Shown here: positions 33,701 to 64,000 of the stretch, piece after piece
How the letters are laid out: each line of letters opens with the position of its first letter
Position numbering within the stretch: position 1 is the stretch's first letter
Source: Macrostomum lignano
Lineage: Eukaryota
Direction: 5' to 3'
Assembly (NCBI GenBank): GCA_002269645.1
Contig: NIVC01001401.1
Span: forward strand, 72,971 to 136,970
DNA length: 64,000 nt
The notes under the pieces: generated by a model
Told to the model about the DNA's origin: nothing
Seen by the model: only the letters and a program-made list of their open reading frames with translations
Database searches by the model: none
Program-made: the position numbers and the translations under genes

Positions 33701-36700
33701 CGCCACACACACCCTCAATTACCCCAGCTAATGTCTTGCTCAAGGACACAAATTGTTCCGAGGTGGCTCGAGAATCGAACCCCCGACCTTTCAGTCGTGA
33801 GTCCGACGCTCACCCCTAGATAGATGCATATACCTAGAAGTATAGATGCATGGATTGCATGGATACATAAACTCACAGACGCATAGATATGCCAGAAAGA
33901 TCAGTTGAGACATCAGTGCCCTGGCAACCCATAAAAATTTAATGATCGCTCTGATTAACACAGAAAACCGATTAGCCAAGTTAGACGTCCTGCGAATTGG
34001 ATGCACAACTTCGGAGGGGGACAGCCAGAACTCCCAGGATGAACGACATCGTCTCACAGCAAAAGTACACTATGCGCTCTTATTATAAACTTCCCACCGC
34101 CAATTCGCAAAGCAGGACTAGAAGAGAGAGGGGGAAATAAGAAGAGGAGAGACTAGATCACGGAGCCAGGAGAGTGGAGAGACTAGATCACGGAGCCAGG
34201 AGAGTGGAAAGACTAGATCACAGAGTCAGGAGAGTGGAAAGACTAAATCACGGAGCCAGAAGAGTGGAGAGACTAGATCACCGAGTCAGAATAGTTGAGA
34301 GATTAGATCACGGAGTAAGAAGAGTGGAGAGACTAGATCGCAGAGCGAGATGAGTAGAGAGACTAGATCACAGAGCGAGATGAGTAGAGAGACTAGAACA
34401 CAGAGTCAGAAGAGTGGAGAGACTAGATCGCAGAGCGAGATGAGTAGAGAGACTAGATCACAGAGTCAGGAGTGTGGAGAGACTAGATCACAGAGTCAGG
34501 AGTGTGGAGAGACTAGAATCACGGAGTCAGAAGAGTGGAGAGATGAGATCACAGAGTCAGAAGCATGTATGGATACAAGTGGAAAATCAGTACATCAGCA
34601 ATAGTCACAAGCGCCGCTCACCAATGGTAGTCACTATGGTGATGGCGTACAGCAGAGCGCCAGGAAAAGTCCAGATAGTCTGATTGACCCCCGGCTTGTC
34701 CTCGTCTGGCCGACTCCAGCCCCGCATGGCGTAGCTGTAAACAGACTCCTCCAGTTTCAGCGCCCAGGTACGCAAAGTGGCCGAATAATTGTACCTGGCC
34801 ATCATAGTATTGGTGCCAACAGTGGAATAATCTTTACCGCCTTTGATTTTCTCTAGCAGAACTCGATTGTTCTCCAACTCGAGGTGGGCAACGCTGGTGA
34901 AATTGTAGAGGCTGGCTTGCATCAATTCTAAAGAGGCCTGCACCTGCAGCACCTGGCGCCGGTAGGCGGTTGAATGATTGAACAGCTGGAACACCTCCTC
35001 TCGGATGCGAGCCTTGGCCGAGTTGACAGCCTGCCGAAGCTCCTTGCGGATGCCGAGCTGAGATCTGGATTTTTTATAGAAACTTTGATTGCTGAAGATG
35101 AAGCATTTTCGGATTTTCAGTTGTCTGTTACTTATATATATATAGTAATTTTCTATTAATAATAAATGGACTATTGATCTAATAATCCGTTTTTTTACTC
35201 ATCGATTCATTCAGTCTCGTTTTTTCATGATCGATATTTTAATATTGATTTGTTAATATAGATTTTTTCTATCGATTTTTTAATCGATTTTATTGCTTAT
35301 ACGATGCTTATTCTCTTCTGTCTACGATTTAGGCTAGGGTTAGGGCTAAAGTTATGGTTAAGGTTAGGGTGTAGGTAAGAGTTTAGGTTAGGATTTAGGT
35401 TATAGGGTTTAGTTTAGGGTTTAGGTTAGGGTGTAGGTTAGCGTTTAGGTTATAGGGTTTAGGGTTAGGGTTTATTCTTGGGCAGTCAGTTTTCGCGGAC
35501 CGGCTTACTTATCCAGCTGCTGTCGGATCCTGTGCACCATGTTAGTGTAGTCCTGCATGCTGCGACCGGTGCTGCCAGACCGGTTGCCACCCGGATGCCC
35601 AAACGGGCACGGCGGACAGCTGATGTTGGACAGGAGGCTGCCGAGGACCCCCACCTGCGTCTCGATGCTGTCCTCATGCTGGGTGAAGTCCCCCTGAAGC
35701 TGGTGCAACAGCTGCGAATTTGCGTCGCCAACTTCGCGCACGGCGTCGGCCAGTCGGAGCCGACTCGAACTCAGCATCTGGCTGATGTTGAGCAGCTTCT
35801 TGTAGGACTCATCTGCCATGTCTTCTAGAACGTGAAACAACTGCTCAAAGTCCGACTTGAGCTCCTGGATCATCTCGACGACTGGTTGGGTCATGTTGCC
35901 GCTGTGGGGTTGGGCAGTTGTAGCTAGATGAGTAATCTACAGACTAGATAAGTAATATACAAGCTATATATGAGTAATCTACAAGCTATATATGAGTAAT
36001 ATACAAGCTATATATGAGTAATCTACAAGCTATATATGAGTAATCTACAAGCTATATATGAGTAATCTACAAGCTATAGATGAGTAATCAACAAGCTAGA
36101 TGAGTAACATCCATAAATTTGGCCCAGAAAAACATTAACATGATTTCCTACCGCAATTAAAAGCAAGAATTTCTCTAATTGGTCGAGTTCAGTTAGTGCA
36201 CTGCAATTACAGTGGATTAGCAATGAGGTCTTGAGCGCGCATTACCAAGACCTCCCACTGCTGATCCTACGAGCTCAAGTGCAATACTAAGCGCCGCATC
36301 AGTGAATTATTCATGTTCACTGAGACTCTCCTCTCTTCCTTTGTTTGCCGAAAATCTGCTTGAGTGCGAATCGAATTTTAGTTTGTTTTTCCGGCACCTC
36401 TACTCCATCCCCGTTCTCTGCCGCAACAGCTGCTGGGGTTACTCAGTTAATTATTAATCTGAGGTTCACCCCGCATGGCTGGCTAGGAGGAAAGAATACA
36501 TTCCTGAGAAGCAGGGATCTTGCAACTGATGGTATGAAAGGCCTGAATAGAGTGCGTGTTCAACTTTCGAAGTTCTTGATTTTTGTAAGCTTCTATCGAT
36601 AGACAGGGTTGATTGTGTAGAGTCTGAGTTCTAGTCTCTTAGATCTAGTCTTTTAGATCTAGTCTCTCAGATCTAGTCTCTCAGATCTAGTCTCTCAGAT

Positions 36701-39700
36701 CTAGTCTCTCAAATCTAGCCTCTCAGATCTAGTCTCTCAGATGTAGTCTCTCAGATCTAGTCTTTCATATCAAGTCTCGTAGATTTAGTCTTTATTATCA
36801 AGTCTCACAGATTTAGTCTCCCTTATTTAGTCTAAGATCTATTCTCTCAGATTTAGACTCTCAGCTCTTAGTCTTTAGATCTAGTCTTTCTGATCTAGTC
36901 TCGTTTCCCAGATCTAGTCTCGCATAGTCTTCCTATTCTAGTCTATAGATCCAGTCTCTCTTGTCTCAATTTTTAGATCTATTCTTAAATAATCTAGTGG
37001 CTCAGATTATCAATATTTTCTTAGGGCAAGCTCTCAGCAGCTTCCTTCCCAGTCCCAGTCTCAAACCTCATATGAATTCTCGTCTGAGCCACGCTCTCCG
37101 TGTACATCCGATTGTCCATGACCGACCGATCGTGCTCCAGGTAGACGAACAGGTAAGCCCCTGACAGGGTGTAGCCAATCACCAGCAGGCACAGGCCGAT
37201 GTGCGAGAACAGGAAGGCCACGGAGGTCTTCAGGCAGGAGACGCAGCGACGCCTTCGTCGCTTCCACTTCGACACCTTCGGCCGAGTGGGCGGCTTGCCG
37301 TCGTTCTGCTGCTGCTGCTGCTGATTTTTCTGCTTCTCGGGCGAGTCTGTCGCCTGGTCGGCGGCGGCCTTCTTGCCATCGGTGTCTGCCGCCTCTGCGA
37401 GCGGCGGCAGGGTTTAAGCTGGACTGAAGGGTCACATCTTTTTCTTTCCTTTTTCCGAATCCATTCACGAATCAATTCACGAATCCATTCACGAATCCAT
37501 TCACGAATCCATTCACGAATCCATTCACGAATCAATTCACGAATCCCTTCACGCATCCATTCACGAATCCATTCACGAATCCATTCACGAATCCATTCAC
37601 GAATCCATTCACGAATCCATTCACGAATCCATTCACGAATACATTCACGAATCCATTCACAAATCCATTCACGAATCCATTCACGAATCCATTCACGAAT
37701 CCATTCACGCATCCATTTACGAATCCATTCACGAATCCATTCACGAATCCATTCACGAATCCATTCACGAATCCATTTACGAATCCATTCACGAATCCAT
37801 TTACGAATCCATTTACGAATCCATTCACGAATCCATTTATGAATCCATTCACGAATCCATTCACGAATCCATTCACGAATCCATTCACGAATCCATTCAC
37901 GAATCCATTTATGAATCCATTCACGAATCCATTTATGAATCCATTCACGAATCCATTCACGAATCCATTCACGAATCCATTCACGAATCCATTTACGAAT
38001 CTCTTCTTGAATCTCGATTTATCTTCACATCCTTCATCCCTCCCTTCAACTCCCTGTCAATCTGACTCTCACTGTCATCTTCAGTCTCCGCCGCAGCCGC
38101 AGACGTCACCCCGCCGCCGGCGGCCAGTGGCGCCAGCAGCAGCTTCGTCTGCGCATCCTGACGCCTCGTTCGCACCGGCCTTTCCGGCGGCGAACCCGCA
38201 GCAGCAGCAGCTGCGGCAGCGGCTGACGCAGGCAAATTGTCGTAGTTGGACGTTCGCTGGCCGGCCGTCGCTCGCAGCTCCTCGATGTCGTCTTCGCTCT
38301 GCATCGCGTCGCTGTAGGTTGTGAAGGCGCTGAATGGGCGAGGCCGGTAATGCAGATTTCTCAGGACCAGAGCCTGGCACTCGCGTTCGGTGAGCAGGCC
38401 GCCTGTCAGGTTGTCGTCCTCGATGCCCTTCAACGCGGCCCCGACTGGCTCTGCACGGTCGGTGTGCAGAGACAAAGGAAAAGTGCATCCGTGTAGAGGA
38501 TAACGGAGATGGCTAATATATGAAGCGAAGCAGGACTGCATGATCGCTGGTTTATTGGCGGGCAACCCGTGTGGTCTACTTGAGGGACGGCCCCAGCCAA
38601 GGACACCCAGAACCAGAATTTGGAGTAGAAACTTTTCTCCCAGATCTTCTGTCGAATCCCGGTCTCGTTCCCGATCCCGATCCCGATCCCGATCCCGATC
38701 CCGATCCCGATCCCGATCCCGATCCCGATCCCGATCCCGATCCCGATCCCGATCCCTTGGGATAAAGGGATACCAGTTTCATTTAGTGTCAAAGAACTGG
38801 CCTGGAAAGAAGAGTTGCCACTCCAAATTCTAGTTTTTCGGTCTCCTTGGCCCAGCTAAGGGGATAATATCTTAGCGCGACCCCGGGATGGACTGTCGGA
38901 TGGGATGCCGCAAAAGTTAACAACTTTTGGCGAATCTGCTTTACTGAAGCACTGAAGCAGACAAGACAGGCAAAGCAGTTAAAATTGTTAGTAGGGGGCA
39001 AAACTTCCGCATTTCTGCTCTCCGCGTCCAGAAACAGTGCTGTGAGCCCAAGCAGGGTGGCAGCAGCGGTGCAGATTGGTTTGACCAGTTTGCGCTTGGA
39101 CAGACCCCAGCATGTGGTCGGAGCCTGGACCATCTAAGCTAGGCTTGGGTCTGAAGATATATCCATGATTTAACATTACCTATCATCAAAGGCTATTCAT
39201 GGAGATCTACAACTAGTAGAATATCTGGAGTGGAAACTGACATCCCTAAAGCAGATTCTAGATCCGTTTGGAATAGCGTAGTTGAAAATCAGCTTATTCC
39301 ATTGGCGTCATGCACAAACGCAGTTAGTTTAGTTTCGTTTATAGTTTATCATATTTGTTTATTAATTCCTCTTTATCACCTTTGGCGGCCAAAAAAACGT
39401 TTAAATTTTTTAATTGCTACGAACCGACGACATTTGCTGATGAAAACTTGAGGGTCTCCATTGAGCGATCAGCTGTGCCAATCAAACCTAAGTGTCACGG
39501 TGACTCTAGTGTTCACTTTTGTACCCGCAGATAGTTCTGTTCTGCGCATATACTTCTGAGAGCCAATTAAAACTAAAATAAAAGTTGGGGAACACTTTCA
39601 AAGTTGCTTTTGAACTACTTAAAGTAGCTTAAGAATTCAGCTACCTCTATGTATAAATATATAGTCTATGGTCGGCTCCGTGAGAGCTGGGGAAGAGAAT

Positions 39701-40587
39701 GGGGACAGGGAGAGAGACTGGGGATGAGCTGGCACGGTCGCTGGAATCCATAGTCTATGGTCGGCTCCGTGAGAGCTGGGGAAGAGAATGGGGACAGGGA
39801 GAGAGACTGGGGATGAGCTGGCACGGTCGCTGGAATCCATAGTCTATGGTCGGCTCCGTGAGAGCTGGGGAAGAGAATGGGGACAGGGAGAGAGACTGCG
39901 GATGAGCTGGCACAATCGCTGGAATCCAGTCTATGGTCGGCTCCGTGAGGGCTGGGGGAGAATGGGGACAGGGAGAGAGACTGGGGATGAGCTGGCACAG
40001 TCGCTGGAATCCAGTCTATGGAGTAACAATGGTGAGCCTCCCATAGCTACGCAAAAGTGAGTTCTGTCACCTTCAGCTGCACTCGGATTCGCCAGAGAAT
40101 TCACGCCGCTTCTACACCCATCGGAGACGCCGTTTTGCGTCGGACCGCCGCCGCCTGACGCAGCGGCAACCAGCAGGGCGGCGGCGTCTGAGCCCGTAGC
40201 CGCTGCCGCCGCTGCCGCAGCCCCCTCGTCTTCTTCATCGTCGTGCGCGATCGGCGCTTTCGTTTCTAGCGAGTGCAGCCCGACTGTGGCCGCGGCGGTG
40301 GTCGCCACCGCTGCAGCTAGGAAGCTGTGCTGCTGCTGATGATGTTGCTGCTGATGTCTCTGATCTTTGCGTCGGTGCTTGGACTCGCCCCGTCTACTCC
40401 GACGACCGGAAGCAGCGGCGTCTCGATGCGGCTTAGCCGCCGGGGTCGCCGACGTTTCTGCGAGGGTCACCGACGTCATTGCCATTGCTGTGGCGGCCTC
40501 GGCACCACGGGCGCGCCGCTTTGCTTCCGCGTCCGCCTTTCGACTGTTGTCGGCGTCGTTTTTCGCGGCGCTGTCGCTTGTTACCAT
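30759..40587 (-). CDS. KCNK: Two-pore-domain (K2P/TWK, KCNK18-like) potassium channel, ~990 aa
   Basis: Exons 40587-40071, 38450-38073, 37394-37067 (M1 [24 protein letters not shown]), 35901-35509, 35064-34622 (P1 [17 protein letters not shown]), 31678-30759 (GYGHVAP, M2, M3, P2 [13 protein letters not shown]4, stop). Total 2979 nt, in frame. The two 5' exons are less certain than the core. Confidence 0.9.
31815..32258. repeat. 31-bp minisatellite CAGTGTCCTTGAATCTGCCTCTCCGCTCCCT in K2P intron
   Basis: About 14 copies. Confidence 0.95.
33643..33819 (-). mobile_element. tRNA-derived SINE with CORE-like central motif, in K2P intron
   Basis: Minus strand reads CTAGGGGTGAGCGTCGGACTCACGACTGAAAGGTCGGGGGTTCGATTCTCG (B-box) followed by TGTGTCCTTGAGCAAGACATT; flanked by ATAGATGC on both sides. 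Confidence 0.6.
34148..34560. repeat. 30-bp minisatellite GAGTGGAGAGACTAGATCACAGAGTCAGAA in K2P intron
   Basis: About 13 degenerate copies. Confidence 0.9.
35328..35472. repeat. Degenerate TTAGGG-like hexamer repeat in K2P intron
   Basis: TTAGGG/TTAGGT/TTTAGG units. Confidence 0.75.
35928..36105. repeat. 22-bp minisatellite ATATGAGTAATCTACAAGCTAT
   Basis: About 8 copies. Confidence 0.9.
36622..36960. repeat. 14-bp minisatellite TCTCAGATCTAGTC
   Basis: Degenerate tandem copies. Confidence 0.85.
37456..38000. repeat. 12-bp minisatellite ATCCATTCACGA in K2P intron
   Basis: About 45 copies. Confidence 0.96.
38689..38756. repeat. (CCCGAT)n hexamer repeat
   Basis: About 11 perfect copies. Confidence 0.95.
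39661..40021 (-). repeat. ~89-bp repeat x4 derived from the coe acceptor and HLH exon, in K2P intron 1
   Basis: Unit nearly identical to 54721-54960; minus strand encodes [13 protein letters not shown]. Confidence 0.93.
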
Positions 40588-41064
40588 GGTAACTGGCGGG
40601 CTGCGCGCAGGGTAAGGATGTAAGTCGGTGGAGGAAACTATCAATACACGTTTCTTCATTACAAACACACTACTTTCAGTAAAGGTTGAAGAAAATGAAA
40701 GCGCGGAGAATTAATAATCTAGAAGAGAAGGCATCAAGGTGAGCGAGCAGCTGATGAAGAAGTCCTGTTTACATTCATTTTCGAACATTGCAGATTTGGT
40801 ACCAGCTATGAATAATTGGTAATCTCGTTAACTTGTAAATTCCATGCACTTTCATTTTCTATCGAACACGAATATCCAAGTCCGATGGAAAGAGTGTTCT
40901 TAGTCCTACCCCAGTTAACACAGAAGGCACTTTATATTGTCGCGAAGACTGCCTTTGCAGTTCTTCACTGTCGCGTTCTTGTAAAAGCATTCTCCATAGG
41001 GTTGGGATCAGGATCAAGAACAGGGGTTGGGTTCGAGATTGGGATCAGGATCAGGACCTGAACT

Positions 41065-41800
41065 AGGGATTCAAGATCGGGATCTAAGCTCGGGATTCAA
41101 GATCGGAATCTAAGCTCAGGATTCAAGATCGGGATCTAAGCTCGGGATTCAAGATCGGGATCTAAGCTAGGGATTCAAGATCGGGATCTAAGCTAGGGAT
41201 TCAAGATCGGGATCTAAGCTCGGGATTCAAGATCGGGATCTAAGCTAGGGATTCAAGATCGGGATCTAAGCTAGGGATTCAAGATCGGGATCTAAGCTCG
41301 GGATTCAAGATCGGGATCTAAGCTCGGAATTCAAGATCGGGATCTAAGCTCGGGATTCAAGTTCGGGATCTAAGCTCGAGATTCAAGTTCGGGATCTTGG
41401 CTCGGGATTCAAGATCGGGATCTAAGCTCGGGATTCAAGATCGGGATCTAAGCTCGGGATTCAAGATCGGGATCTAAGCTCGGGATTCAAGATCGGGATC
41501 TAAGCTCGGAATTCAAGATCGGGATCTAAGCTCGGGATTCAAGTTCGGGATCTAAGCTCGAGATTCAAGTTCGGGATCTTGGCTCGGGATTCAAGATCGG
41601 GATCTAAGCTAGGGATTCAAGATCGGGATCTAAGCTCGGGATTCAAGATCGGGATCTAAGCTAGGGATTCAAGATCGGGATCTAAGCTAGGGATTCAAGA
41701 TCGGGATCTAAGCTCGGGATTCAAGATCGGGATCTAAGCTCGGGATTCAAGATCGGGATCTAAGCTCGGGATTCAAGATCGGGATCTAAGCTAGGGATTC
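41065..41800. repeat. 26-bp minisatellite CTCGGGATTCAAGATCGGGATCTAAG
   Basis: About 28 copies. Confidence 0.96.
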
Positions 41801-42254
41801 TAAAGAAGACGGGCAAAGTTTCAATGCCTGAGTCAGTGCAGCAAACAGCCGGTGCAAGTCGGCAGTCAGACTCGATCAAAATCAGCGGCCGCTTACCCCC
41901 AGTTACAATGGAAGGCGTAGGGCCTGTCAGAATGCGCGTGTTTTCCCAAAAATCGATCCAGGAAATCTCTGGGCAAGCCTGACAAATAGCCGGCTTGCAG
42001 CGGGAATAATGCCTTATATACACTGCCTCCTTGATGGGGATTTTTCTCCCCCCCCCATCAGCCCCCCGATCCTCGCCGGCTCGCCAAATTTGCCCCATTC
42101 GCCCCGTGCGATTCGTTCCAAGAGAATAAAAGCCTATCCGAGTGGCTTATCATCTGGGATGTTGCTCTCGTCAGCCCTTGGCTAAAATGAATATCATCTG
42201 CTTTCCACTTGATGACTGCTGTGCTGTTCATTCCGGTCTTGTAGAAACTCTGTT

Positions 42255-51941: not shown

Positions 51942-52364
51942 GTATGCAAAGCAACCACAGCAGCCCAAAGCAACCGCAAGCAGAAGCTCAGGTAAACCAG
52001 GCGCCTTGTTAACAAGGTACTGTCCAGCCCTTACTGTTGCCGCGGCTCATAACTTGAGCTGGCAGCCTCTGCAGGCCCCCTCCTGTCAGCCTGAGTGGGA
52101 GGGTGCAGCAGCTCGGCATTGAAATTGTTGCTCATTTCTTTTGTCGGATTGTTTCTTCTGTTCTCTAACTAAATTTCAGCCTCTGCCTTCTATTGTGTCG
52201 AATTTCTATTTTGTCTCTCTTTTATCTGCCAAGAGGGGTTCGAAGGCACCCAGGGGGGGGGGGGTCATCGTTGCCACTGGCTACAGGGGTCTAAGGGACT
52301 GAGGACAGCGGGGGTGGGTCCCCACTCCCCAACCACCTGGAATGCAGTCTGCGCTCCGAGAGGC

Positions 52365-52646
52365 TATAAAATGCTAGGCCGGGTGAGCAGCGCTTTTGAG
52401 CAGTCGGGAGCCGCCCGAGAGCTGGAGGGTCCCCTCCGCCATTCGGGAAGGTGGAGGAGCTGAGGTGAGTTTACACTCTCCGCTGGTAAATAGTATTGCA
52501 ATTTTTATTAAATATTTGACAGAAAAAACACCGTTCCTTCCTTGTTTATCTGCAGGCACCAAGCCATGGCGCTGACAGACTCGGCTGGTGGTGCCGGCCA
52601 CTATTGTACATATGCTGCTGTTTATCGCTTTTACAATTTTAGCTAG
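52365..52646 (+). other. Candidate small spliced transcript with a 26-codon ORF
   Basis: TATAAAA 52365-52371, donor GTGAGT at 52465, pyrimidine-rich acceptor ending 52555, gccATGG at 52566, TAG 52644-52646. Confidence 0.3.
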
Positions 52647-53694
52647 TTCTGCTTCACGCGTAGCTTTCGAAACTGTTTAGAATGTATATTTGATATTTGA
52701 TAGAATTTCTAGCTTATTAACCTTCCAGCGTACTTTTCGTTGCAATCCACAGATTAACATGTCTTCGAGCATCGAAAATTGTAATTCCTATAGGGCCTTC
52801 ATTGTCATTAGCAACTCATTGTTAAATATCGCTGTTAGATAACTTTCATTTTGTCAACTCGCGCAGTCAAACAAGACAGAGAGATAGTGGAAATTTAGTG
52901 ACCGCCCCTGCTAGTTGAACTTTCTTGATTGCCTCTTTGCTCATAACTGCTTGTTTGTCCCCCCAATGAACCAATACCTGTTCAACTAGCATTGGCGGTG
53001 CTGTCAAAGCATTTCCATGCGTAATAAATCTCTTCTGTCTGCATCATTCAGTACTCAGATAATATTTTTGGAAAACTTGTTGCTCGCTCCGTTCGTTCAA
53101 AAATCATCAAGTTCGCCTTAGCCGTCAACAGCTTGTCAATTAACCCAGGCACAGAGTGCAAACAGTGTGTTCTTTCTAGCGCTGATGCCTATAGTTAATC
53201 ATCAATTTACCTGTACACTACTATATTTGTGTTGATGCGAATCACATTAAACAAACAAATTATTAATAAATCTCTATTTAACTGAATTATAAACTAAGAA
53301 ACAGCTCCCAGCAGAGTTCATTTTAAATTCTTGAGTTTAAATAAATGTTTCGTTTTGTTTTACTGCTTTTTTAATTTCGCGCATTGTTAGAATTTATCTT
53401 GTCAGTCATTGGTGCACAGTTTTGAATCAGCTGATTAGTTTGAAAAAATTCAAGACACTACAAACTAAATTATTCTGGCAATTAGCATACTCGCCTACTG
53501 TTTGTACAATAAATTGTCAGTAATGTATAGAGCGCATGTTCGAGGCATGAAAACTGGTCACAGAAAACGCACTGTTCAGACAGTAGCAGATCAAGGGATT
53601 GATGCCCAAATTCTTGTAAATAAGGTGGATGATGCGATCAAAATTGTCTGAGCTCTGATGCAGCTGATTTAGTTGCTAGGCAGGAGTCTCAGCT

Positions 53695-56644
53695 TCATTT
53701 TACTGGCGAAGCGATGGAGCCGCCGCCAGGGTAAGTCGGCCCCGAGCTGCTCAGAGCGAACGGGTTGACTGAGGTGAAGGGCAGAGAGGACATGCCTGCA
53801 AAATGTTTAGAAAGTGGTGTGCTACATACAATGTACACTACTAACAAATCATCAATAAGTAGCAACAAAAGAGTTTTGCTGGCTAAAACTTACGCGCTCC
53901 GTGCAGAAAGTCCTGACCGGGCCCAGTAACCGCCGGCATGCCCATTGGTACGCCCATCTGCATGCCCATCTGCATGCCCATCTGCATTCCCATACTGCCT
54001 GAGGCGGCAGTAGGATAGGAGGCTGCGGCGGCTGCTGCGGCGGCTGCGGCGGCTGCGGCGGCGGCTGCAGCTGTGCCGTTGTCGTTGTTATTTCCAACTT
54101 CCGATCCGCCGTTTGAAGCCAACGTCTGGTGGTGGTGGTGCTGCTGCTGCTGCTGAAGATCAGCATATCCCGGATGCTGCACTGCATGATGGTGATGATG
54201 CTGCTGCTGCTGCTGCTGTTGCTGAAGATGCTGCTGTTGCTGATGCTGCTGGTGATGGTGAGGCAGCTGACCCTGTCTGGACCCACCAACTGGCCGGTTG
54301 TACTCGTCCGTCGAAGCTGCAGCGGCGGCAGCTGCGGCAGCGGCCGCCATAGCCGAGGATGACCACTGACCGGCCACCGAGTCAGCAGATGAGACCGCGA
54401 GCTGGCTGGTGTAAGACTGCGGAATGGTGTCGATTCTTGACAGTGAACTTTTATTGCAATAAAATCGGATATTAATGCGGAGCCAAGGTATTTTTGCGAA
54501 CTTACATGGAAGCTGTTGTTGTTGGCCGCCTGCATTGACGGACTGAGTGGCGGTGGAGGCGGCGCCTGCTGGTGATGAATTTGCTGCTGTTGCTGCTGCG
54601 CCTGCTGCATCTGCTGGTGCTGCCTCGGCATGGTGTACAGAGCTTCGGCCACGTCTGCGGCTCGCTTTAGAATAATCTCTTTCGGCAGTCGGTCTGGGTC
54701 GCCCGGGTGTCTCGGTATGAGCTTGCACAGTCGCTGGAATCCATAGTCTATGGTCGGCTCCGTGAGGGCTGGGGGAGAGAATGGGGGGCAGGGAGAGAGA
54801 CTGCGTATGAGCTGGCATAGTCGCTGGAATCCATAGTCTATGGTCGGCTCCGTGAGGGCTGGGGGAGAGAATGGGGACAGGGAGAGAGACTGCGGATGAG
54901 CTGGCATAGTCGCTTTAATCCATAGTCTATGGTCGGCTCCATGAGGGCTGGGGGAGAGAATGTGTACTGAAGCCTTCAACCCTGGCCAATACAACTTAAC
55001 TACACAGCAATTTACATGTATATGTTAAGACATACGAGCGCCAACCCATCAAAGCTACTTTTAGTAGAGCTACGAGACTACGAAAGCAGCACAAACTGCA
55101 AATTCTTACAAGTGTAAACAAAGCGACCGGGCGCGTTCTTGCAAAACTGCTTGGACTTGTAGGACAGGGTCACTTCCACTACGCCTGGTATGTGACGCGG
55201 TGGAGTCTGCACTCGGATGGCATGTGACGTAATCATCTGCCAAAGGAGTGCGAAAGGTCCCGTTAAAATACTGTTAAATGAGAGAGCTACATGAAAATAA
55301 ATTGAACTCACCTCGCTCCAGACCAGCATGGTGCCAAATACCACCTGCAATCCGTCGAAGAAGTTCTCTCCCACAATGATGACTGTGGAGCCGCCGTTAG
55401 TCCAGCCTTCGCTGGGGCAAACAGCTTTGATGCTTGGCGTTGCTACAGGGCGGTTGTCATGGTGAGAAAGATTTTTCAGCACAAAGGCGTATATACTGGA
55501 GTACGTGAGTCCTTATTAATCTTAGCAATTTCTATTGATGGCTTTTACTAGCTGCGCAATTCCCCACTAGCCCTTATCTAAGCTGAGCAATTTCCCACTA
55601 GTTCTTATCACAGCTGAGCAATGCCCCACTAGCCCTTATCTAAGCTGAGCAATGCCCCACTAGCCCTTATCTAAGCTGAGCAATTTCCCACTAGTTCTTA
55701 TCTAAGCTGAGCAATGCCCCACTAGCCCTTATCTAAGCTGAGCAATGCCCCACTAGCCCTTATCTAAGCTGAGCAATGCCCCACTAGCCCTTATCTAAGC
55801 TGCGCAATTCCCCACTAGCCCTTATCTAAGCTGAGCAATTTCCCACTAGTTCTTATCTAAGCTGAGCAATGCCCCACTAGCCCTTATCTAAGCTGAGCAA
55901 TGCCCCACTAGCCCTTATCTAAGCTGAGCAATTTCCCACTAGTTCTTATCTAAGCTGAGCAATGCCCCACTAGCCCTTATCTAAGCTGAGCAATTTCCCA
56001 CTAGCCCTTATCTAAGCTGAGCAATTTCCCACTAGTTCTTATCTAAGCTGAGCAATGCCCCACTAGCCCTTATCTAAGCTGAGCAATGCCCCACTAGCCC
56101 TTATCTAAGCTGAGCAATGCCCCACTAGCCCTTATCTAAGCTGCGCAATTCCCCACTAGCCCTTATCTAAGCTGAGCAATTTCCCACTAGTTCTTATCTA
56201 AGCTGAGCAATGCCCCACTAGCCCTTATCTAAGCTGAGCAATGCCCCACTAGCCCTTATCTAAGCTGAGCAATTTCCCACTAGTTCTTATCTAAGCTGAG
56301 CAATGCCCCACTAGCCCTTATCTAAGCTGAGCAATTTCCCACTAGCCCTTATCTAAACTGAGCAATTCCCCACTAGCCCTAATCTAAGCCGAATAAAAAA
56401 TTCCCCTCGAATTCCCCCTCCAGACCCCGAGCACCCACCTCCGTCGCTTGGATCTATCCTGCGGGCCCGCCGGCCGTGCTTGCTGTTGTTGTGGACGAAC
56501 ATGTTGTCCGACACGGCCAGCAACTGGCCGGACAGGAGGCTCGGCGAGGCCGACACGGCCACCTGGAACCGGCGCATGTCCCTCGGATTGCCGGCGTTCT
56601 TCAAACAGTTCTGGTTGCACTTCATGAAGAACTTCAGGAAGAAG
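53695..56644 (-). CDS. coe: COE/EBF (collier) transcription factor, 3' part: end of DNA-binding domain, IPT/TIG, HLH and C-terminal tail
   Basis: Exons 56644-56439 ([27 protein letters not shown]), 55442-55312, 55236-55110 ([23 protein letters not shown]), 54768-54506 ([13 protein letters not shown]...[21 protein letters not shown]), 54416-53894, 53795-53695 ([13 protein letters not shown]...*). All phases match. N-terminal DBD exons were not found in the window. Confidence 0.96.
54721..54960 (-). repeat. Tandem triplication (90/89-bp unit) of the coe acceptor and 5' half of the HLH exon
   Basis: Three copies of ...ctctcccccAG|ccctcacggagccgaccatagactatgg. Confidence 0.93.
55548..56388. repeat. 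31-bp minisatellite CCCTTATCTAAGCTGAGCAATGCCCCACTAG in coe intron
   Basis: About 27 copies. Confidence 0.96.
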
Positions 56645-56687
56645 CTGGCGGTGTGAAAGATTTGGGGAGTTCTCTGAGACATACATA

Positions 56688-56988
56688 GCTGCTCATTCGT
56701 GACTGTACAGCTCGGGATGTACGGAATGTACAGCTCATTCGTGACTGTACAGCTCGGGATGTACGGAATGTACAGCTCATTCGTGAGTGTACAGCTCGGG
56801 ATGTACGGAATGTACAGCTCATTCGTAAGTGTACATCTCGGGGTGTACGGAATGTACAGCTCATTCGTGAGTGTACAGCTCGGGATGTACGGAATGTACA
56901 GCTCATTCGTGAGTGTACAGCTCGGGATGTACGGAATGTACAGCTCATTCGTGAGTGTACAGTTCGGGATGTACGGAATGTACAGCTT
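56688..56988. repeat. 42-bp minisatellite TCATTCGTGAGTGTACAGCTCGGGATGTACGGAATGTACAGC in coe intron
   Basis: About 7 copies. Confidence 0.95.
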
Positions 56989-57497
56989 ATTTGGGGATGT
57001 ACAGTGTATCGTACCGCTTCACTAGAGTATGTTCTTCACAAGCTGTACAGATTAAATACGTATGTAATCTTAAAGGACACTATAATAATCATGCAAAAAT
57101 AGCTATGCTGTACGAGTCTTGGCCTCTCAGTAAGTTGGCAGAGTACTTTCCTTTTATAATAAATAATTTTACTACTACTACAATTCGAAATTAATTAATT
57201 GATGAAATTTCATGTGGACCGAGAGAGGTCAAAAGTCGCGATAAAAGAATTCATAAACGCGAGTCGCCAAATGATAAAAGTAACGAGTAGAATTCGCTTT
57301 GGCACCCCCCACACCGTAACAGGATTTTCGAACGGCTCTGCTGCCTCTTCCAGCCTTGGACGGAGGAGACGAGGAGGCGGAGCCGGCCAAATTGCACTGG
57401 TGGACATCTACTTATTATTGTAGTAAGGCGGTAGTACTAATAGTACGATTATTTATAGCTGCTATAAGAGAAACGATGTGCTTTATCTTCTAGTAAA

Positions 57498-60038
57498 GAT
57501 AGAGCAGAGAGAGATGGAGAGAGAGGGAGATAGAGAGAGATGGAGAGAGAGGGAGATGGAGAGAGAGGGAGATAGAGAGAGATGGAGAGAGAGGGAGATG
57601 AAGAGAGAGGGAGATAGAGAGAGATGGAGAGAGAGGGAGATAGAGAGAGATGAAGAGAGAGGGAGATAGAGAGAAATGGAGATAGAGAGAGATGGAGATA
57701 GAGAGAGATGGAGATAGAGAGAGATGGAGATAGAGAGAGATGGAGAGAGAGGGAGATAGAGAGAGATGAAGAGAGAGGGAGATAGAGAGAGATGGAGATA
57801 GAGAGAGATGAAGAGAGAGGGAGATGGAGAGAGAGGGAGATAGAGAGAGATGGAGAGAGAGGGAGATGGAGAGAGATGAAGAGAGAGGGAGATGGAGAGA
57901 GAGGGAGATAGAGAGAGATGGAGAGAGAGGGAGATGAAGAGAGAGGGAGATAGAGAGAGATGGAGAGAGAGGGAGATGGAGAGAGAGGGAGATAGAGAGA
58001 GATGGAGAGAGAGGGAGATGAAGAGAGAGATGGAGATAGAGAGAGATGGAGAGAGAGGGAGATGGAGACAGATGGAGATAGAGAGAGATGGAGAGAGAGG
58101 GAGATGGAGAGAGAGAGAGAGGGAGATAGAGAGAGATGGAGATAGAGAGAGATGGAGAGAGAGGGAGATAGAGAGAGATGAAGAGAGAGGGAGATAGAGA
58201 GAGATGGAGATAGAGAGAGATGAAGATAGAGAGAGATGGAGAGAGAGGGAGATAGAGAGAGATGGAGAGAGAGGGAGATGAAGAGAGAGGGAGATAGAGA
58301 GAGATGGAGAGAGAGGGAGATAGAGAGAGATGGAGATAGAGAGAGATGGAGATAGAGAGAGATGGAGATAGAGAGAGATGGAGATAGAGAGAGATGGAGA
58401 TAGAGAGAGATGGAGAGAGAGGGAGATGGAGAGAGATGAAGAGAGAGGGAGATAGAGAGAGATGGAGATAGAGAGAGATGAAGAGAGAGGGAGATAGAGA
58501 GAGATGGAGAGAGAGGGAGATAGAGAGAGATGAAGAGAGAGGGAGATAGAGAGAGATGGAGATAGAGAGAGATGGAAATAGAGAGAGATGGAGATAGAGA
58601 GAGATGGAGAGAGAGGGAGATGGAGAGAGATGAAGAGAGAGGGAGATAGAGAGAGATGGAGATAGAGAGAGATGAAGAGAGAGGGAGATGGAGAGAGAGG
58701 GAGATAGAGAGAGATGGAGAGAGAGGGAGATGGAGAGAGATGAAGAGAGAGGGAGATAGAGAGAGATGGAGATAGAGAGAGATGAAGAGAGAGGGAGATG
58801 GAGAGAGAGGGAGATAGAGAGAGATGGAGAGAGAGGGAGATGGAGAGAGATGGAGAGAGAGGGAGATAGAGAGAGATGGAGATAGAGAGAGATGGAGAGA
58901 GAGGGAGATGGAGAGAGATGGAGAGAGAGGGAGATAGAGAGAGAGGGAGATGGAGAGAGAGGGGGATAGAGAGAGATGGAGAGAGATGGAGAGAGAGGGA
59001 GATGGAGAGAGAGGGAGATGGAGAGAGAGGGAGATGGAGAGAGAGGGAGATAGAGAGAGATGAAGAGAGAGGGGGATAGAGAGAGATGGAGATAGAGAGA
59101 GATGGAGAGAGAGGGAGATAGAGAGAGATGGAGAGAGAGGGAGATAGAGAGAGATGGAGATAGAGAGAGATGGAGAGAGAGGGAGATGGAGAGAGATGGA
59201 GATAGAGAGAGATGGAGAGAGAGGGAGATGGAGAGAGAGGGAGATAGAGAGAGATGGAGATAGAGAGAGATGAAGAGAGAGGGAGATAGAGAGAGATGGA
59301 GATAGAGAGAGATGGAGAGAGAGGGAGATGGAGATAGAGAGAGATGGAGAGAGAGGGAGATGGAGAGAGATGAAGAGAGAGGGGGATAGAGAGAGATGAA
59401 GAGAGAGGGAGATAGAGAGAGAGGGAGATGGAGAGAGATGGAGAGAGAGGGAGATGGAGAGAGAGGGAGATGGAGAGAGATGAAGAGAGAGGGGGATAGA
59501 GAGAGATCAAGAGAGAGGGAGATGGAGAGAGATGAAGAGAGAGGGAGATAGAGAGAGAGGGAGATGGAGAGAGATGAAGAGAGAGGGAGATAGAGAGAGA
59601 GGGAGATTGAGAGAGATCAAGAGAGAGGGAGATGGAGAGAGAAATGGAGAGAGAGGGAGATAGAGAGAAATGGAGAGAGAGGGAGATGGAGAGAGAGATG
59701 AAGAGAGAGGGAGATAGAGAGAGATGGAGAGAGAGGGAGATGGAGAGAGATGAAGAGAGAGGGGGATAGAGAGAGATCAAGAGAGAGGGAGATGGAGAGA
59801 GAAATGGAGAGAGAGGGAGATGGAGAGAGAAATTTAGAGAGAGGGAGATAGAGAGAAATGGAGAGAGAGGGAGATGGAGAGAGAGAGAGATGAAGAGAGA
59901 GGGAGATAGAGAGAGATGGAGAGAGAGGGAGATGGAGAGAGAGATCAAGAGAGAGGGAGATGGAGAGAGAGGGAGATAGAGAGAGATGGAGAGAGAGGGG
60001 ATAGAGAGAGATGAGGAGAGAGGGAGAGGGAATATAGA
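57498..60038. repeat. ~2.5-kb GA-rich satellite (GAGAGAGGGAGATAGAGAGAGATG-type units)
   Basis: Polypurine tandem array; source of ORF 57483..60041. Confidence 0.96.
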
Positions 60039-61329
60039 CATAGGTTCAAAGAAAAACAGAGATTAAAGAAAATGACACGCATAGGAAAGCATCATTTACT
60101 ACCATTGCTGTTCAGGAGCTCACTCAGAAAAAAACAGACCTATTCAATCTAAACCTTACAGTGCTTTGATACTTCACTATATAGTTTAGTGAAGTTAAAC
60201 TGAAAATCTGGGGAAAGCATAAAAAACTTCAGCAGACTATATCGTGACTCCAGTGGTGAAAGTTTTACAACTTAAACTCGCTCCGCGTTGAGTCACACGC
60301 TGTTAGACCGGCCCCCCTCTCACCCTTCGGACAGGTGACAAGTGTCCAATTTGGCAATAAACAGAAATGCCGCCTCGGGCTGTTCCCAAGGTAATTAATT
60401 ATTCATGAACGGCTTTCTCAGCGGCCACTTTCTTGAGACCGTGGCGCTGCCTTTTTGTGCATAAAAGATCAACTGGCAGACACGTAAGTCGCATTTGGCA
60501 GTTTAAACTACAGACTTTGATTCCCAGAGGACCCCAAACTGACAAGGTCACGGGATCTGAGGGTGATTTCAACAGACAACACATCCCTCCATTTCTATTC
60601 CCTTCCTCACTTTCTAATCCCTGTAAAGTTTTATTAGAGCGGACTCTCAGTCCAGCTCAGAATAGCCTCCCCAATTGAATCCAGGCTCTCGAGCAGTGCA
60701 GTGTGTGCATATCTGGGCAAGCGGCACAAACTGCTAATTGAGTTACCGAGCGGGGGCTTCCAATTCAATTGAGACCAGATGCCTATGGAGATTCCATGCA
60801 GCCTCCGCTAGGATGGAGCTGGGATTATTAAACTACTCTACTGCATCAATGCACGCGGGTCTCTATTTTTATCTGCAGACGAAGGCTAAGAAGCAGCTGT
60901 ACCGTGAAAAATTCAGTTATAATTAATGGGATCCGTTGAATTATCCACCTGAGATAAGTTAATCGATACGAGGCAGCTAAATGGGATAAAAGTGGGATCG
61001 AGTTTAAGATAGGGGATTTCGTAAAACTGTGTAGTTGTTCAAATCTAGACCCTAACGCTCTAAAATCCCATTCAATCTCTGCAGAAGCAGAAATTTGCAT
61101 ATTTTACTCAATTCTACGTCACTACTCTTTACACTACAGGGAACTGGATTTGAGAGACAAAAGCAAACACCCAGCACTGGTTGATGAACTGGGTCCTCGA
61201 TCAGCTGATCACTGCGCTCATTGGCCAGTGCATTGCTGACAAAATTCCAGTTGCCTTAGTTTATGCGGGATTATACAATCATCTGCATCCCGACCTGTAA
61301 TTAGAAAGTCAATTTATCTGGTGAAAAAT

Positions 61330-61792
61330 CACTAGCCCTTACAGCTACCATCACCAGTCCTTATAGCTACCATCACCAGCCCTTACAGCTACCATCACCA
61401 GCCATTATAGCTACAATCACCAGCCCTTACAGCTACCATCACCAGCCCTTATAGCTACCATCACCAGCCCCTACAGCTACCATCACCAGCCCTTATAGCT
61501 ACAATCACCAGCCCTTACAGCTACCATCGCCAGCCCTTATAGCTACCATCACCAGCCCTTACAGCTACCATCACCAGCCCTTACAGCTACCATCACCAGC
61601 CCTTACAGCTACCATCACCAGCCCTTACAGCTACCATCACCAGCCCTTACAGCTACCATCACCAGCCCTTACAGCTACCATCACCAGCCCTTACAGCTAT
61701 CATCACCAGCCCTTACAGCTACCATCACCAGCCCTTACAGCTACCATTACCAGCCCTTATAGCTACCATCACCAGCCCTAGCTACCACCAGC
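61330..61792. repeat. 22-bp minisatellite CAGCCCTTACAGCTACCATCAC
   Basis: About 21 copies. Confidence 0.95.
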
Positions 61793-64000
61793 TTACACAT
61801 GTTAATGTGATCTTACATTTTGTCCAACAACTGAATTCTATCTACGAGCTAATACCAAAAAAGCAGCACCTGTCACGCACAGTACAAGAACCGCACCAGA
61901 TGTGACCAGCTAGCATTCTAGGCACAGTAATAAAACTTCTCCTCAGCCTCATCCCCAACGCCAACGCCATTCGACATGCGGCATTTTTGCCCCCCCATAC
62001 TCGCTTGGCCATCCATCACACTATTTTCTAAGTCACTTTCTCTCAGCTGTCTGCCTCACTCTCCCTCGAAACGCCTCCCACCCGCCGTTATCTGGCCTTT
62101 TGATCGGGTCAGTGCTCTCAGGCATCCTCACCCTCTCTTTACTCCCCCCTCCTCCCCATTTTGCATCCATTTTGTTCCCGTGGCCAGCCAGCCGTCTATG
62201 AGACAGCAGAGGCCGCATTAGGGTGAGAAAGAGCGAGTGAGAGAGACGGGGTTAAGACTCGGAATTGGAAATATGCTTTTTTTCTCCATCTGCTTTGCTC
62301 ATCTCTCTCCCCTTCTCTACTTTTAGCTATCTCTGACGAATAATTTATGCCAGTCGCAAACTCGAAGCCTGGCTATACAGGCTAGAAGTAAGAATACCGC
62401 TGCTGCAGCCACTCTCTCTCTCCTGGAGCCTACCAGAGAAAGTGGTAGAGTGAGAGGCAGAAAGGGAAAACTGCTCTGGATGGAATGCTTCTCTGGTTGG
62501 AATGTAAATTTCTCTCTCTCTCTCTCTACATCTATCTATCTATCTCCTTTTTCCGCCAGATGAGAATTGTCATGGACCGTCGGGAACGGCCGTCGGTCAT
62601 TCTGCGGCAACCCCCCCCTCCCCGATCCCCTCTTCCTTCATCGAAACTCGAATAAGAGAGGACAGCTCGCTAGGATGAAGGGCCCCTTGGGGGCGCGATG
62701 CTGGACAGAGGAGGCTGGGGATGCAGGGCGCTGCCAGCGGGTTATCATCAGCTCATTAGGGGTTGGCTAGCGATGGGGAGCAGAGAGTGTAAGCCAAGGC
62801 AAGTGGGAGATAACTGCCAGACTGCTGCACCAGGCCAACCCCGCAAAAAATTGCAAATTCAATTACCGGGGATCAGAATTAACATGAATCTACTTTTTTA
62901 TTCGCCTTCTCGTTTCTATACTCTATATATATATATATGCCCAGCCTTCCCGCGACAGACTGGGGATACGGGAGGGCTTGGGGTGCAGGGCGCTTTGAAG
63001 AAGACGAACAAACCGTTTCTGCATTCTGCTCCTTATTCCAAGAGGCATTAAAGCGAATTCGCTGGGGACTTGGGTCCGAGTTTTATAGAAATGAGTTGAG
63101 CCGAACAGCGAGAGGGTGAAATGCAGCCATAACACAGAAATCATAATCAATATCTCGGCTAATGCTGAGAGCTGGCTCAGCCCAGAGTTTCCCAGCAAAA
63201 CAAAAGCTGATAATTGAGGCGAGGGACAAGCAAGACAGTAAATTACCCTGACAGGTGGCTAGCGTTTGACCGCGCGAGTCGAAGCCCTCACCTAGAAGGC
63301 CCCGATTCCTTTCTCGGCAACCAGAATAGGATGGGCACGAAGAGCGAGGCTGCAGGAATCCGCAAAGCTAACAAAATCTTCTTTGTTCAAACCGTATAGA
63401 AAAAATAGCGGCTAAGATGGTGGCTGATGATAAAATGCGTAATTGGCTGTGTAACTGGCACCGGCCGGGATGCGCCTCTCGGAAAGAAGAACTTGAGTCC
63501 CGAGCCCCTCCATCCTGACAACAGCTTGGCAACCGCGGTCAGACTTTGTGATTCTTAGCCTCTCGGAATCTTTCCGCTTTCTCCAAAACAGCAATGGGCG
63601 AAGGTGCGAGGCCAGAGAGATCCCAATCGGGGATGAAATTCCCAGCGGGTTTTTTGCGATTCTCTTTTTTGTTATTTCAAAAAGGGCGTCGCAGTGGTCG
63701 CTTCGACAACCCCCCCCCCCGACGCTCCTTCTTTTCTCCGCCGTTCCCGCGGTGACAGTGAAATCGGATGAGCAGCGCCAGATGCTGGACTCCGATATAT
63801 TCTCCGACCCCGCTTGTTCAACGAAGTGGCGGCGGCCGGAGAATCCCCTGGCGACCGCGGGGCGGCGAACCCGCGCCGGCGCGCCCCCATCTTTCTCGGT
63901 GTCCCTCCTCGTTCGTTCTAACTCCCACTCCAAACATTCGAGCTTCGAGTTTCAACCGTTTAGCAGCTCGTGTTTGTCCCAGCCTGAACCTTTTTGCTAA

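Follow-up and report, generated by a model that had tools for sequence, protein, structure and literature searches.

A minisatellite built from an intron–exon boundary of a Macrostomum lignano coe gene, with three candidate splice acceptors

The DNA analyzed here, a 64,000-nucleotide stretch from Macrostomum lignano (hereafter the window), carries on its minus strand six exons of a coe gene, which lie next to a K2P channel gene. The window matches locus L003 on contig NIVC01001401.1 of the Mlig_3_7 assembly (GCA_002269645.1) with 100 per cent identity. In order of transcription, the coe exons are:

56439–56644, minus strand: exon A, C-terminal part of the COE DNA-binding domain (DBD)
55312–55442, minus strand: exon B, start of IPT/TIG
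55110–55236, minus strand: exon C, end of IPT/TIG, with a donor (TT/gtaaga) common to all three acceptors described below
54506–54768, minus strand: exon D, H1-loop-H2 and a Q-rich tail, with the bona fide acceptor at 54768 and a gtaagt donor after 54506
53894–54416, minus strand: exon E, an SYTSQLAVS motif and then a Q/H/A-rich region
53695–53795, minus strand: exon F, the last coding exon, ...IASPVK and then the stop (the 53695 end is approximate, read off rather than computed)

The identification of an HLH exon of coe in the first-pass annotation is borne out by comparison with the COE/EBF family. IPT/TIG is followed by the COE HLH, exon D matches the Pfam profile COE1_HLH over its full 44 positions (E = 2.7e-37), and the relatives 3N50, 3MLP, and 3MUJ in PDB are matched over IPT and HLH at E-values of about 1e-80. 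The best protein matches are lophotrochozoan (62–78 per cent identity), and identity to mollusc and nemertean COE is 75–78 per cent over 260 residues. An insect gene (Drosophila kn/collier), considered in view of the short introns and polyQ, was rejected on the basis of these matches and of an identical M. lignano model. A M. lignano gene model from an independent assembly (P0048) is identical over exons A–C and F and is without exons D and E, the GenBank annotation of the locus flanks contains no coe, and two of three large protein-database searches gave no coe transcript or protein of M. lignano that includes the HLH exon. Within the window, the DBD is represented by its C-terminal exon only: zinc-knuckle exons (H-X3-C-X2-C-X5-C) were not found up to position 64000 with human EBF1 and ten lophotrochozoan COEs as queries. 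A GNRN...SDPV match at 60498–60602 was considered as an upstream DBD exon and rejected as a weak chance match that has no CSRCC and no open exon.

The end of the intron before exon D and the start of that exon are repeated in tandem:

54715–54962, minus strand: array A, an 89/90-bp minisatellite of 2.8 copies that covers the end of the intron and 55 nt at the start of the coe HLH exon, as delimited by TRF and unit alignment
54769–54858, minus strand: unit A2, 90 nt, with a pseudo-exon start at acceptor 54858, the use of which adds 30 in-frame residues
54859–54947, minus strand: unit A3, 89 nt, with a pseudo-exon start at acceptor 54947, the use of which shifts the frame
54838–54840, minus strand: premature TAG reached from acceptor 54947, followed after 332 nt by the exon D donor, with two exon junctions downstream
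54808, minus strand: candidate branch-point adenosine in a CTCAT motif, ~38–39 nt upstream of acceptor 54768 (motif scan only)

Array A is a real minisatellite in M. lignano coe. TRF reports it as one tandem array with a period of 89, 2.8 copies, 94 per cent matches, and a score of 440, and a 39-nt pattern across the acceptor has six matches in the window and none in 100 shuffles. The head-to-tail unit, within the 10–100 bp of minisatellites, is composed of ~35 nt of intron end and 55 nt of exon start. The units are mutually distinct, differing at 3–6 positions and by one indel. The exon-like part of A2 differs from the true exon at 2–3 of 55 nt and that of the distal unit, A3, at 6 of 55. In A3, the unit alignment contains both substitutions that had been reported earlier (ACG>ATG and TTCCAG>TTAAAG), together with CTCATAC>CTCATCC and a different C-run.

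Three minus-strand acceptors, with exon starts at 54947, 54858, and 54768, were found exactly where the first-pass annotation had placed them. Each reads cattctctcccccag followed by CCCTCA, and at least 15 nt of intron and the first 6 nt of exon are identical among the three. Where tandem acceptors need at least two signal-competent sites behind one donor, three cattctctcccccag sites are present here. In the motif scan, the branch-point-like A of acceptor 54768 has an equivalent at 54897 for acceptor 54858, and at both sites a pyrimidine tract of 31–32 nt lies between this A and the CAG; for acceptor 54947, the nearest branch-point-like motif is 80 nt upstream.

We spliced exon C, which ends at 55110 and is followed by a donor gt at 55109, in silico to each acceptor and recovered the three outcomes that had been proposed. 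Joining to 54768 gives the normal COE sequence. Joining to 54858 adds 90 nt in an open frame, with 30 extra residues that repeat helix 1. Joining to 54947 brings in 179 nt and a frameshift and runs into the TAG at 54840–54838 after 36 codons; in silico, the distance of this stop from the D/E junction far exceeds the 50–55 nt before the last junction beyond which NMD is expected.

Beyond what the first-pass annotation had described, the window holds a second array of the same unit:

39661–40021, minus strand: array B, 4.1 copies of the 89-bp unit of array A, in intron 2 of the K2P channel gene BOX15_Mlig031602g2
38452–40071, minus strand: K2P intron 2, removed in the annotated mRNA (exon 2 ends at 40072 and exon 3 starts at 38451)

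Array B lies 14.7 kb downstream of array A, in the neighboring gene; apart from AG-rich satellites, no other dispersed repeat pair occurs in the window. Tandem repeats make up 37 per cent of the window, in 40 arrays, and 15 per cent of the M. lignano genome is simple or tandem repeat (PMC5730564). A scan of metagenomes for the unit junction gave no match, nor did an Rfam scan of the window.

The sequenced line has three copies of this locus. We reached the paralogous loci via the K2P gene, and the 10-kb flanks compared end at window-equivalent positions 52281 and 53476, 1.2–2.4 kb short of array A; the copy-number variation given here is that of array B only. Within one assembly, the copy number of array B differs among the three paralogous loci (4.1, 7.2, and 15.2), and such variation between copies characterizes a VNTR. 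Units are homogenized within arrays, with 14 identical units in the paralogous copy L002.

The K2P coding sequences of g1, g2, and g3 all read ...NPSAAE/EPVGAAL..., joined across array B, and the annotated K2P mRNAs of all three copies bypass every acceptor module in the array. The M. lignano annotation is transcriptome-derived (PMC5730564). For K2P, it represents the dominant isoform only, and minor use of the modules is compatible with it.

All extra units carry CAG where the true exon has AAG, the codon of a lysine that is conserved in every other COE examined. CAG is common to all of them, and we therefore regard the units as evolving as non-coding copies. The earlier suggestion of an exon-boundary duplication caught in progress fits poorly with these data. 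The unit belongs to a minisatellite family with two loci, and since array B occupies the equivalent site in all three copies, carrying both the tandem junction and the CAG that the units share as a derived state, the duplication most likely happened before the paralogues split. Judged from these sequences, the repeat family is probably older than the split.

The best explanation, which we consider probable, is that the minisatellite arose by boundary duplication, with 54768 as the functional acceptor and 54858 and 54947 as decoys or minor sites. On this account, the array was founded when a segment of ~35 nt from the intron end and 55 nt from the start of the HLH exon was duplicated in tandem. 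Each 89–90-bp unit is a complete, portable 3' splice-site module, consisting of the branch-point-like CTCAT, the pyrimidine tract of 31–32 nt, the CAG, and an exon start, and coe in this way offers three tandem acceptors. The extra units drift as non-coding DNA, with their common K>Q change and the larger number of changes in the distal unit, and the unit of array A also seeded the second, copy-number-variable array in the intron of the next gene. Splicing to 54768 would give functional mRNA. Any use of 54858 would yield a protein longer by 30 residues that has part of a second helix 1, and any use of 54947 a premature-stop transcript, probably removed by NMD.

Several observations run against the status of 54858 and 54947 as decoys. 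The three acceptors are identical across the core signal, and the exon D donor, 350–440 nt downstream of the upstream acceptors, could define longer exons, unlike the situation in the K2P intron. In short introns, the donor-nearest site (here 54947, with a 162-nt intron) might be favored; a search of the literature for rules of choice among duplicated acceptors yielded nothing usable. Moreover, the K2P annotation speaks for the dominant isoform alone, and selection for an in-frame product would also give a unit A2 of exactly 90 nt and free of stops.

The last point leads to a different reading, in which the array is a functional splicing device: 54858 would supply a helix-1-duplicated isoform, 54947 would act as an NMD off-switch, and one additional C would have been selected to restore the frame. 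We regard this as unlikely. It would account for the identity of the core signals, for the branch-point-like motif and pyrimidine tract that accompany acceptors 54768 and 54858, and for the greater similarity of A2 than of the distal unit to the true exon. Among about 30 units, A2 alone is 90 nt long, and it stays open for 30 codons; however, chance would put one-third of unit lengths in frame, the exon is the source of 18 of the 30 codons, and stops are rare in the other 12 because these are pyrimidine-rich. The vertebrate H2d, discussed below, likewise required a second, frame-restoring step, and a low-confidence model has the pattern helix, Pro-rich linker, helix, helix (AlphaFold, pLDDT 51.5, used for the helix pattern only and made from the contiguous genomic reading H1'-linker-H1-L-H2, not from the spliced form). 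On the other hand, the extra units carry the non-conservative K>Q at an invariant lysine, the decisive base sits in a homopolymer of a PacBio assembly, and the K2P intron holds identical modules that are ignored. The claim that the locus offers isoforms is weakened on two counts: such modules are skipped by the annotated mRNAs of three K2P copies, and the in-frame property hangs on one C.

That C lies in the following feature:

54783–54788, minus strand: C6 homopolymer (within TGCCCCCCATT, 54790–54780) that makes A2 90 rather than 89 nt long

The in-frame isoform rests on one base because the difference between 90 and 89 nt is one C in this run; with one C fewer in A2, the reading from acceptor 54858 ends at a TAG at 54750–54748. 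The array could then be real and the 90-nt length of A2 a homopolymer miscall, in which case both upstream acceptors would be out of frame and there would be no +30-residue isoform. Among the about 30 units seen, all others are 89 nt long (in the window, L001, and L002) except one of 87 nt, and, at the position of TGCCCCCC in A2, they carry TGTCCCC or TGCCCCC. The assembly was made from PacBio CLR reads with Canu and polished with Pilon using short reads, the placement of which is ambiguous in a region with three copies and internal repeats. Yet Pilon polishing normally corrects such indels, and a change of T to C followed by the gain of a C in the growing C-run is a plausible real mutation, for which the intermediate TGCCCCC is present in units of L001. 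A miscall seems to us improbable, even though the creation of the stop at 54750–54748 by a single deleted C would agree with it.

It is similarly doubtful that this coe copy is not the working gene, being either a 5'-truncated or redundant paralogue or a hypomorph in which the upstream acceptors spoil most transcripts, with the array itself neutral. With three copies of the locus in the DV1 line, a neutral array could be tolerated. DV1 is known for duplicated chromosomes (PMC5730564), which is in keeping with such redundancy. On the contig itself, the locus is present a second time in inverted orientation (L001), and by coordinates the coe exon A of that copy should lie only ~9 kb away, head to head; the third copy is on another contig, NIVC01002145.1. 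A search of the 7.3 kb upstream of exon A gave no exon for the N-terminal ~185 DBD residues, and the absence of coe from the GenBank annotation of the flanks points the same way. In contrast, none of the six exons present is disrupted, their splice sites are canonical gt-ag, their motifs are conserved, and their agreement with the P0048 model over exons A–C and F comes from an independent assembly. The upstream exons may sit past the window, behind a 2.5-kb satellite, and Canu may have produced the inverted arrangement as a chimera; an inverted repeat marking the center of a contig palindrome was not found within 52000–64000. The three locus copies, and the 5' DNA-binding exons not found within the window for this copy, nevertheless weaken the earlier description of the gene as an essential regulator.

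Finally, it is extremely improbable that the whole triplication is an assembly artifact of a single true copy, even in a repeat-rich region of a contig with a suspicious inverted structure, given that the three units differ at several positions and by an indel, that array A spans only 250 bp (far below PacBio read length), and that arrays of the same unit recur independently at a second locus in each of three copies that were assembled separately.

The closest known parallel is in the same protein family. In COE proteins, H1-L-H2 is ancestral and mediates dimerization, and the vertebrate H2d arose from exon duplication (Daburon et al. 2008; PMC2394523), in agreement with the background given in the first-pass annotation. 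In the two-step model for H2d, frame-incompatible copies first allow alternative splicing only, and a second step restores the frame (PMC2394523). Like H2d, array A is a tandem duplication in the HLH-coding part of a COE gene with a potential extra helix, and most M. lignano units are out of frame (89 nt), with one in frame (90 nt). Unlike H2d, the duplicated piece is an intron end with a partial exon rather than a whole exon, and it concerns helix 1 rather than helix 2. The extra copies in M. lignano have no donor of their own, their inclusion in mRNA is hypothetical, and the unit is a copy-number-variable minisatellite that is present in another gene too. The flatworm may have repeated on helix 1 the two-step route of vertebrates, with an 89-nt out-of-frame duplication followed by a C insertion that was fixed because 54858 is used, giving a full-length COE with H1'-(Pro-rich linker)-H1-L-H2 and a unit that is a mobile acceptor cassette beginning to colonize another intron; this is a long shot, and we hold it to be quite unlikely.

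Tandem acceptors that arise by duplication of the acceptor region are known, NAGNAG being the shortest case. As in these, several equivalent AGs follow one donor in coe, and the outcome is set by whether the spacing is a multiple of three; unlike the 3–12 nt of NAGNAG-type tandem acceptors, the spacing here is 89–90 nt. Since the copies bring their own branch-point-like motif and pyrimidine tract, the coe acceptors would be independent modules rather than rivals for one branch point. With intronic minisatellites and VNTRs, the arrays share the 89-bp head-to-tail unit, homogenization, and copy numbers of 4, 7, and 15 across paralogues. They differ from typical intronic VNTRs in that the unit derives from a conserved coding exon boundary and contains a full acceptor, and in that array A overlaps its source exon. 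The position of the predicted stop reached from 54947, with two junctions downstream, is a textbook NMD configuration, as in AS-NMD; unlike in AS-NMD, there is no sign of the poison configuration being conserved, and both the use of 54947 and its NMD sensitivity are hypothetical.

More likely, the extra acceptors are unused, and array A is one more minisatellite in a genome with 15 per cent tandem repeats. The locus would then be a warning for annotation, since the HLH exon is missing from the sole deposited gene model and GenBank lacks a coe model at this site. If, however, the extra acceptors are used, the locus would be a natural, datable case of an exon-boundary duplication creating isoforms of a dimerizing transcription factor. 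It would come with a built-in internal control, the K2P intron with 4–15 copies of the acceptor module that are apparently ignored, and would be a handy system in which to learn what makes acceptors usable beyond a branch point, a pyrimidine tract, and an AG.

The coe gene, a Collier/Olf/EBF (COE/EBF) homolog on the minus strand, was rebuilt as six exons, and the acceptor boundary of exon D, which carries the HLH (H1-loop-H2), is repeated in tandem (array A).

Coding exons of the rebuilt coe gene model and neighboring tandem arrays, in window coordinates.
56691–56991, tandem array of 42 bp x 7 just upstream of coe exon A
56439–56644, minus strand, coe exon A
55550–56389, tandem array of 31 bp x 27 between coe exons A and B
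55312–55442, minus strand, coe exon B
55110–55236, minus strand, coe exon C
54506–54768, minus strand, coe exon D
53894–54416, minus strand, coe exon E
53795 down to the stop past ...IASPVK, minus strand, coe exon F

Array A spans 54715–54962 and has a period of 89, 2.8 copies, 94 per cent matches and a score of 440 (Tandem Repeats Finder). The first-pass annotation had described three acceptors here, and the description holds base for base: on the minus strand, cattctctcccccag is followed across the putative junction by CCCTCA(C/T)GGAGCCGACCATAGACT three times, with first exon bases at 54947, 54858, and 54768. The substitutions listed for the distal copy (ACG to ATG, TTCCAG to TTAAAG) are also present. 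The acceptor-spanning 39-nt pattern has six matches in the window and none in 100 dinucleotide-preserving shuffles, and the identity of the feature is nearly certain. Each unit joins 55 nt from the start of exon D, CCCTCACGG...GCTCATAC, to a pyrimidine-rich segment, GCAGTCTCTCTCCCTG(T/C)CCCC(C)ATTCTCTCCCCCAG. Homology to the true exon stops past GCTCATAC, at 54714, and homology to the intron upstream of the array starts only at cATTCTCTCCCCCAG, 54962. By motif inspection, every unit contains CTCAT approximately 38–39 nt 5' of the next CAG, and the intervening 31–32 nt are nearly all pyrimidine; other coe acceptors have yTCAy or TTAAC-like motifs 12–30 nt upstream. Because each has its own CTCAT and a long pyrimidine tract, acceptors 54858 and 54768 have the appearance of complete 3' splice-site modules. 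At 54947, the acceptor farthest upstream, the tract is shorter and the closest branch-point-like motif, TTAAC, lies at a distance of 80 nt.

The assignment to COE is supported by the HLH of exon D (Pfam COE1_HLH, E = 2.7e-37) and by matches of the IPT-HLH stretch to the EBF1/EBF3 structures 3MLP, 3N50, and 3MUJ (E about 1e-80). No near-identical full-length coe protein was found in large protein databases, where the best full-length matches come from molluscs and one nemertean (75–78 per cent over 260 residues). A single M. lignano coe model is deposited, a short UniRef entry (A0A1I8IWB3) that is 100 per cent identical across exons A, B, C, and F. Aligned to 53703–57397, it starts in a non-conserved ORF (57251–57397) and joins exon C straight to exon F with the frame kept, skipping the HLH and Q-rich exons. 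This structure is probably a prediction artifact, although it may alternatively represent an HLH-less isoform. Exon D (54506–54768) encodes both H1 and H2, which in cnidarians and deuterostomes are separated by an ancestral phase-0 intron (Daburon et al., PMC2394523); this intron therefore appears to have been lost in M. lignano. Tandem repeats also shape the C-terminal half of the protein: exon E (53894–54416) has runs of Q, H, and A and a 12-bp coding repeat, (MGMQ)n, at 53936–53998.

The three core acceptors are equivalent, and joining exon C to each in turn gives three coding outcomes, all as first annotated. Acceptor 54768 yields the normal COE protein sequence. Acceptor 54858 adds 90 nt and, with the frame open, 30 residues. 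Acceptor 54947 adds 179 nt and shifts the frame into a TAG (54840–54838) after 36 codons; the resulting transcript would be a target of NMD, as its stop comes 332 nt before the D/E junction and is followed by two junctions. The open frame from 54858 traces to the length of the middle unit (A2, 54769–54858), which alone among approximately 30 units seen is 90 nt long; the rest are 89 nt, apart from one of 87 nt. A2 has TGCCCCCC where other units have TGTCCCC or TGCCCCC, a difference of a single C in the run 54788–54783. Minus this C, the reading from 54858 would meet a TAG at 54750–54748. The assembly was built from PacBio CLR reads with Canu and Pilon polishing, and the placement of short reads is ambiguous in a region that is internally repeated and present in three copies. 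An in-frame isoform would therefore depend on one base of uncertain quality.

The window is rich in such repeats, with 40 separate tandem arrays covering 37 per cent of positions 1–64000 (periods 4–89 bp, up to 161 copies), some of which reach within ~50 nt of coe splice sites inside introns. Simple and tandem repeats make up 15 per cent of the M. lignano genome, and the DV1 line has duplicated chromosomes, with 180 Mb in blocks at least 95 per cent identical (PMC5730564). In self-comparison, only one dispersed repeat besides AG-rich satellites was found: the array A unit recurs, 4.1 times in the same orientation and with 96 per cent matches, at 39661–40021 (array B, located via tblastn). Array B lies in a two-pore potassium channel (K2P) gene at 30759–41970 that matches GenBank BOX15_Mlig031602g1, g2, and g3. 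The g2 locus (L003) is 100 per cent identical to 20759–51970, which places the window on contig NIVC01001401.1 of GCA_002269645.1 (Mlig_3_7), record coordinates being window positions plus 72970. By mapping of the annotated protein, K2P exon 2 ends at 40072 and exon 3 begins at 38451 (junction ...NPSAAE/EPVGAAL), so array B is intronic; it begins 50 nt past the exon 2 donor. At the identical site, two paralogous copies of the K2P-coe locus have 7.2 copies (L001, 12390–13026) and 15.2 copies (L002, 12838–14186) of units of ~89 nt, whose acceptors are identical to that of coe over at least −15 to +43. Array B thus behaves as a minisatellite, and 14 identical units in L002 point to recent expansion or homogenization. 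It starts and stops in equal unit phase, CCATAGACT (39650–39661 and 40021–40045; likewise in L001 and L002), and there is a loose resemblance between the flank upstream of it, GGCTCACCATTGTTACTCCATAGACT, and CCCTCACGGAGCCGACCATAGACT of the unit, which could be insertion-point microhomology or a decayed partial unit.

M. lignano genes were annotated by RNA-seq-guided transcript assembly (PMC5730564), and all three annotated K2P proteins span exons 2 and 3 over 4, 7, or 15 acceptor modules. Because these mRNAs bypass every copy, the module alone is insufficient to capture splicing in the dominant K2P mRNA; minor use is possible. In coe, we marginally favor 54768 as the working acceptor, with 54858 and 54947 as decoys or minor sites; the repeat feature and this choice of acceptor, taken together, are moderately probable. 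Arguments for use of the upstream acceptors instead are that coe, in contrast to the K2P intron, has a donor (that of exon D) within 350–440 nt of them, which might allow longer exons to be defined, and that 54947 would yield the shortest intron (162 nt). If the extra C of A2 is real, it may have restored the frame by chance, as one-third of lengths are in frame and 18 of the 30 codons come from the exon, the remainder being pyrimidine-rich. Alternatively, it may have been selected as a frame-restoring change, in which case 54858 would be in use. The contiguous H1'-linker-H1-L-H2 reading, modeled with AlphaFold from the single sequence (pLDDT 51.5, low confidence), has helices at 10–22, 39–48, and 61–77, the first two separated by a disordered Pro-rich linker; the model would be consistent with an additional helix and has no bearing on dimerization.

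Conservation of the exon-derived part among animals indicates that the unit came from the coe exon. At a codon that is AAG (K) in the true exon, all extra units in both arrays carry CAG (Q); every other COE examined has K at this position, suggesting that the extra units descend from one already mutated copy. The exon-end/intron-start junction common to both arrays can arise only in tandem, so one array probably seeded the other. As array B occupies a shared position in each of the three paralogous copies, which diverge by about 1–6 per cent in unique DNA, the family is most likely older than the split between them. A2 and A3 (54859–54947) differ at 6 of 89–90 positions and A and B units at 8 of 89–90; the extra units diverge in the manner of non-coding DNA. 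Groupings conflict at two sites (CTCATAC versus CTCATCC, CTG versus CTA), as expected if units exchange sequence. Less parsimoniously, a fragment was copied to B, became tandem there, and returned to A, in which case array A could be younger. Under either history, the description of a duplication "caught in progress" overstated its recency.

We found no N-terminal DNA-binding-domain exons from exon A to the end of the window (56700–64000); the missing part is the N-terminal two-thirds of the domain, zinc knuckle included. A GNRN...SDPV similarity at 60498–60602 is a weak match attributable to chance. Contig NIVC01001401.1 holds an inverted second locus copy (L001, record 142939–175510; window, record 72971–136970), and from the coordinates the two coe exons A are predicted to lie head to head, ~9 kb apart. 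Within 52–64 kb of the window no inverted repeat was found. A third copy lies on NIVC01002145.1, and none of the fetched flanks has a GenBank coe annotation. This configuration may be a real inverted duplication truncating coe, a Canu chimera at a 2.5-kb AG-rich satellite, or a long intron. That this coe copy is non-functional is improbable, as all six exons present are intact; the possibility nonetheless weakens the argument from an essential developmental regulator.

The COE/EBF background invoked earlier agrees with the literature: H1-L-H2 is ancestral, dimer formation requires both helices, and the duplicated helix 2 of vertebrate EBF (H2d) arose by tandem exon duplication, with a second step required to restore the frame (Daburon et al. 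2008, PMC2394523). The coe array resembles step one of that model, and the 90-nt unit is possibly step two. Unlike in H2d, however, an exon boundary rather than an exon is duplicated, the helix concerned is H1, inclusion in mRNA is hypothetical, and the unit is a variable minisatellite also found in another gene. The array groups as well with tandem alternative acceptors and with intronic VNTRs. Overall, the original observation stands and its interpretation does so in part; new here are the second array, the copy-number variation, the spliced-out intron position, the shared derived codon, the dependence of the frame on one base, and the organism. A nascent helix-1 duplication with a selected frame-restoring insertion is very doubtful, and would be of considerable interest if true.
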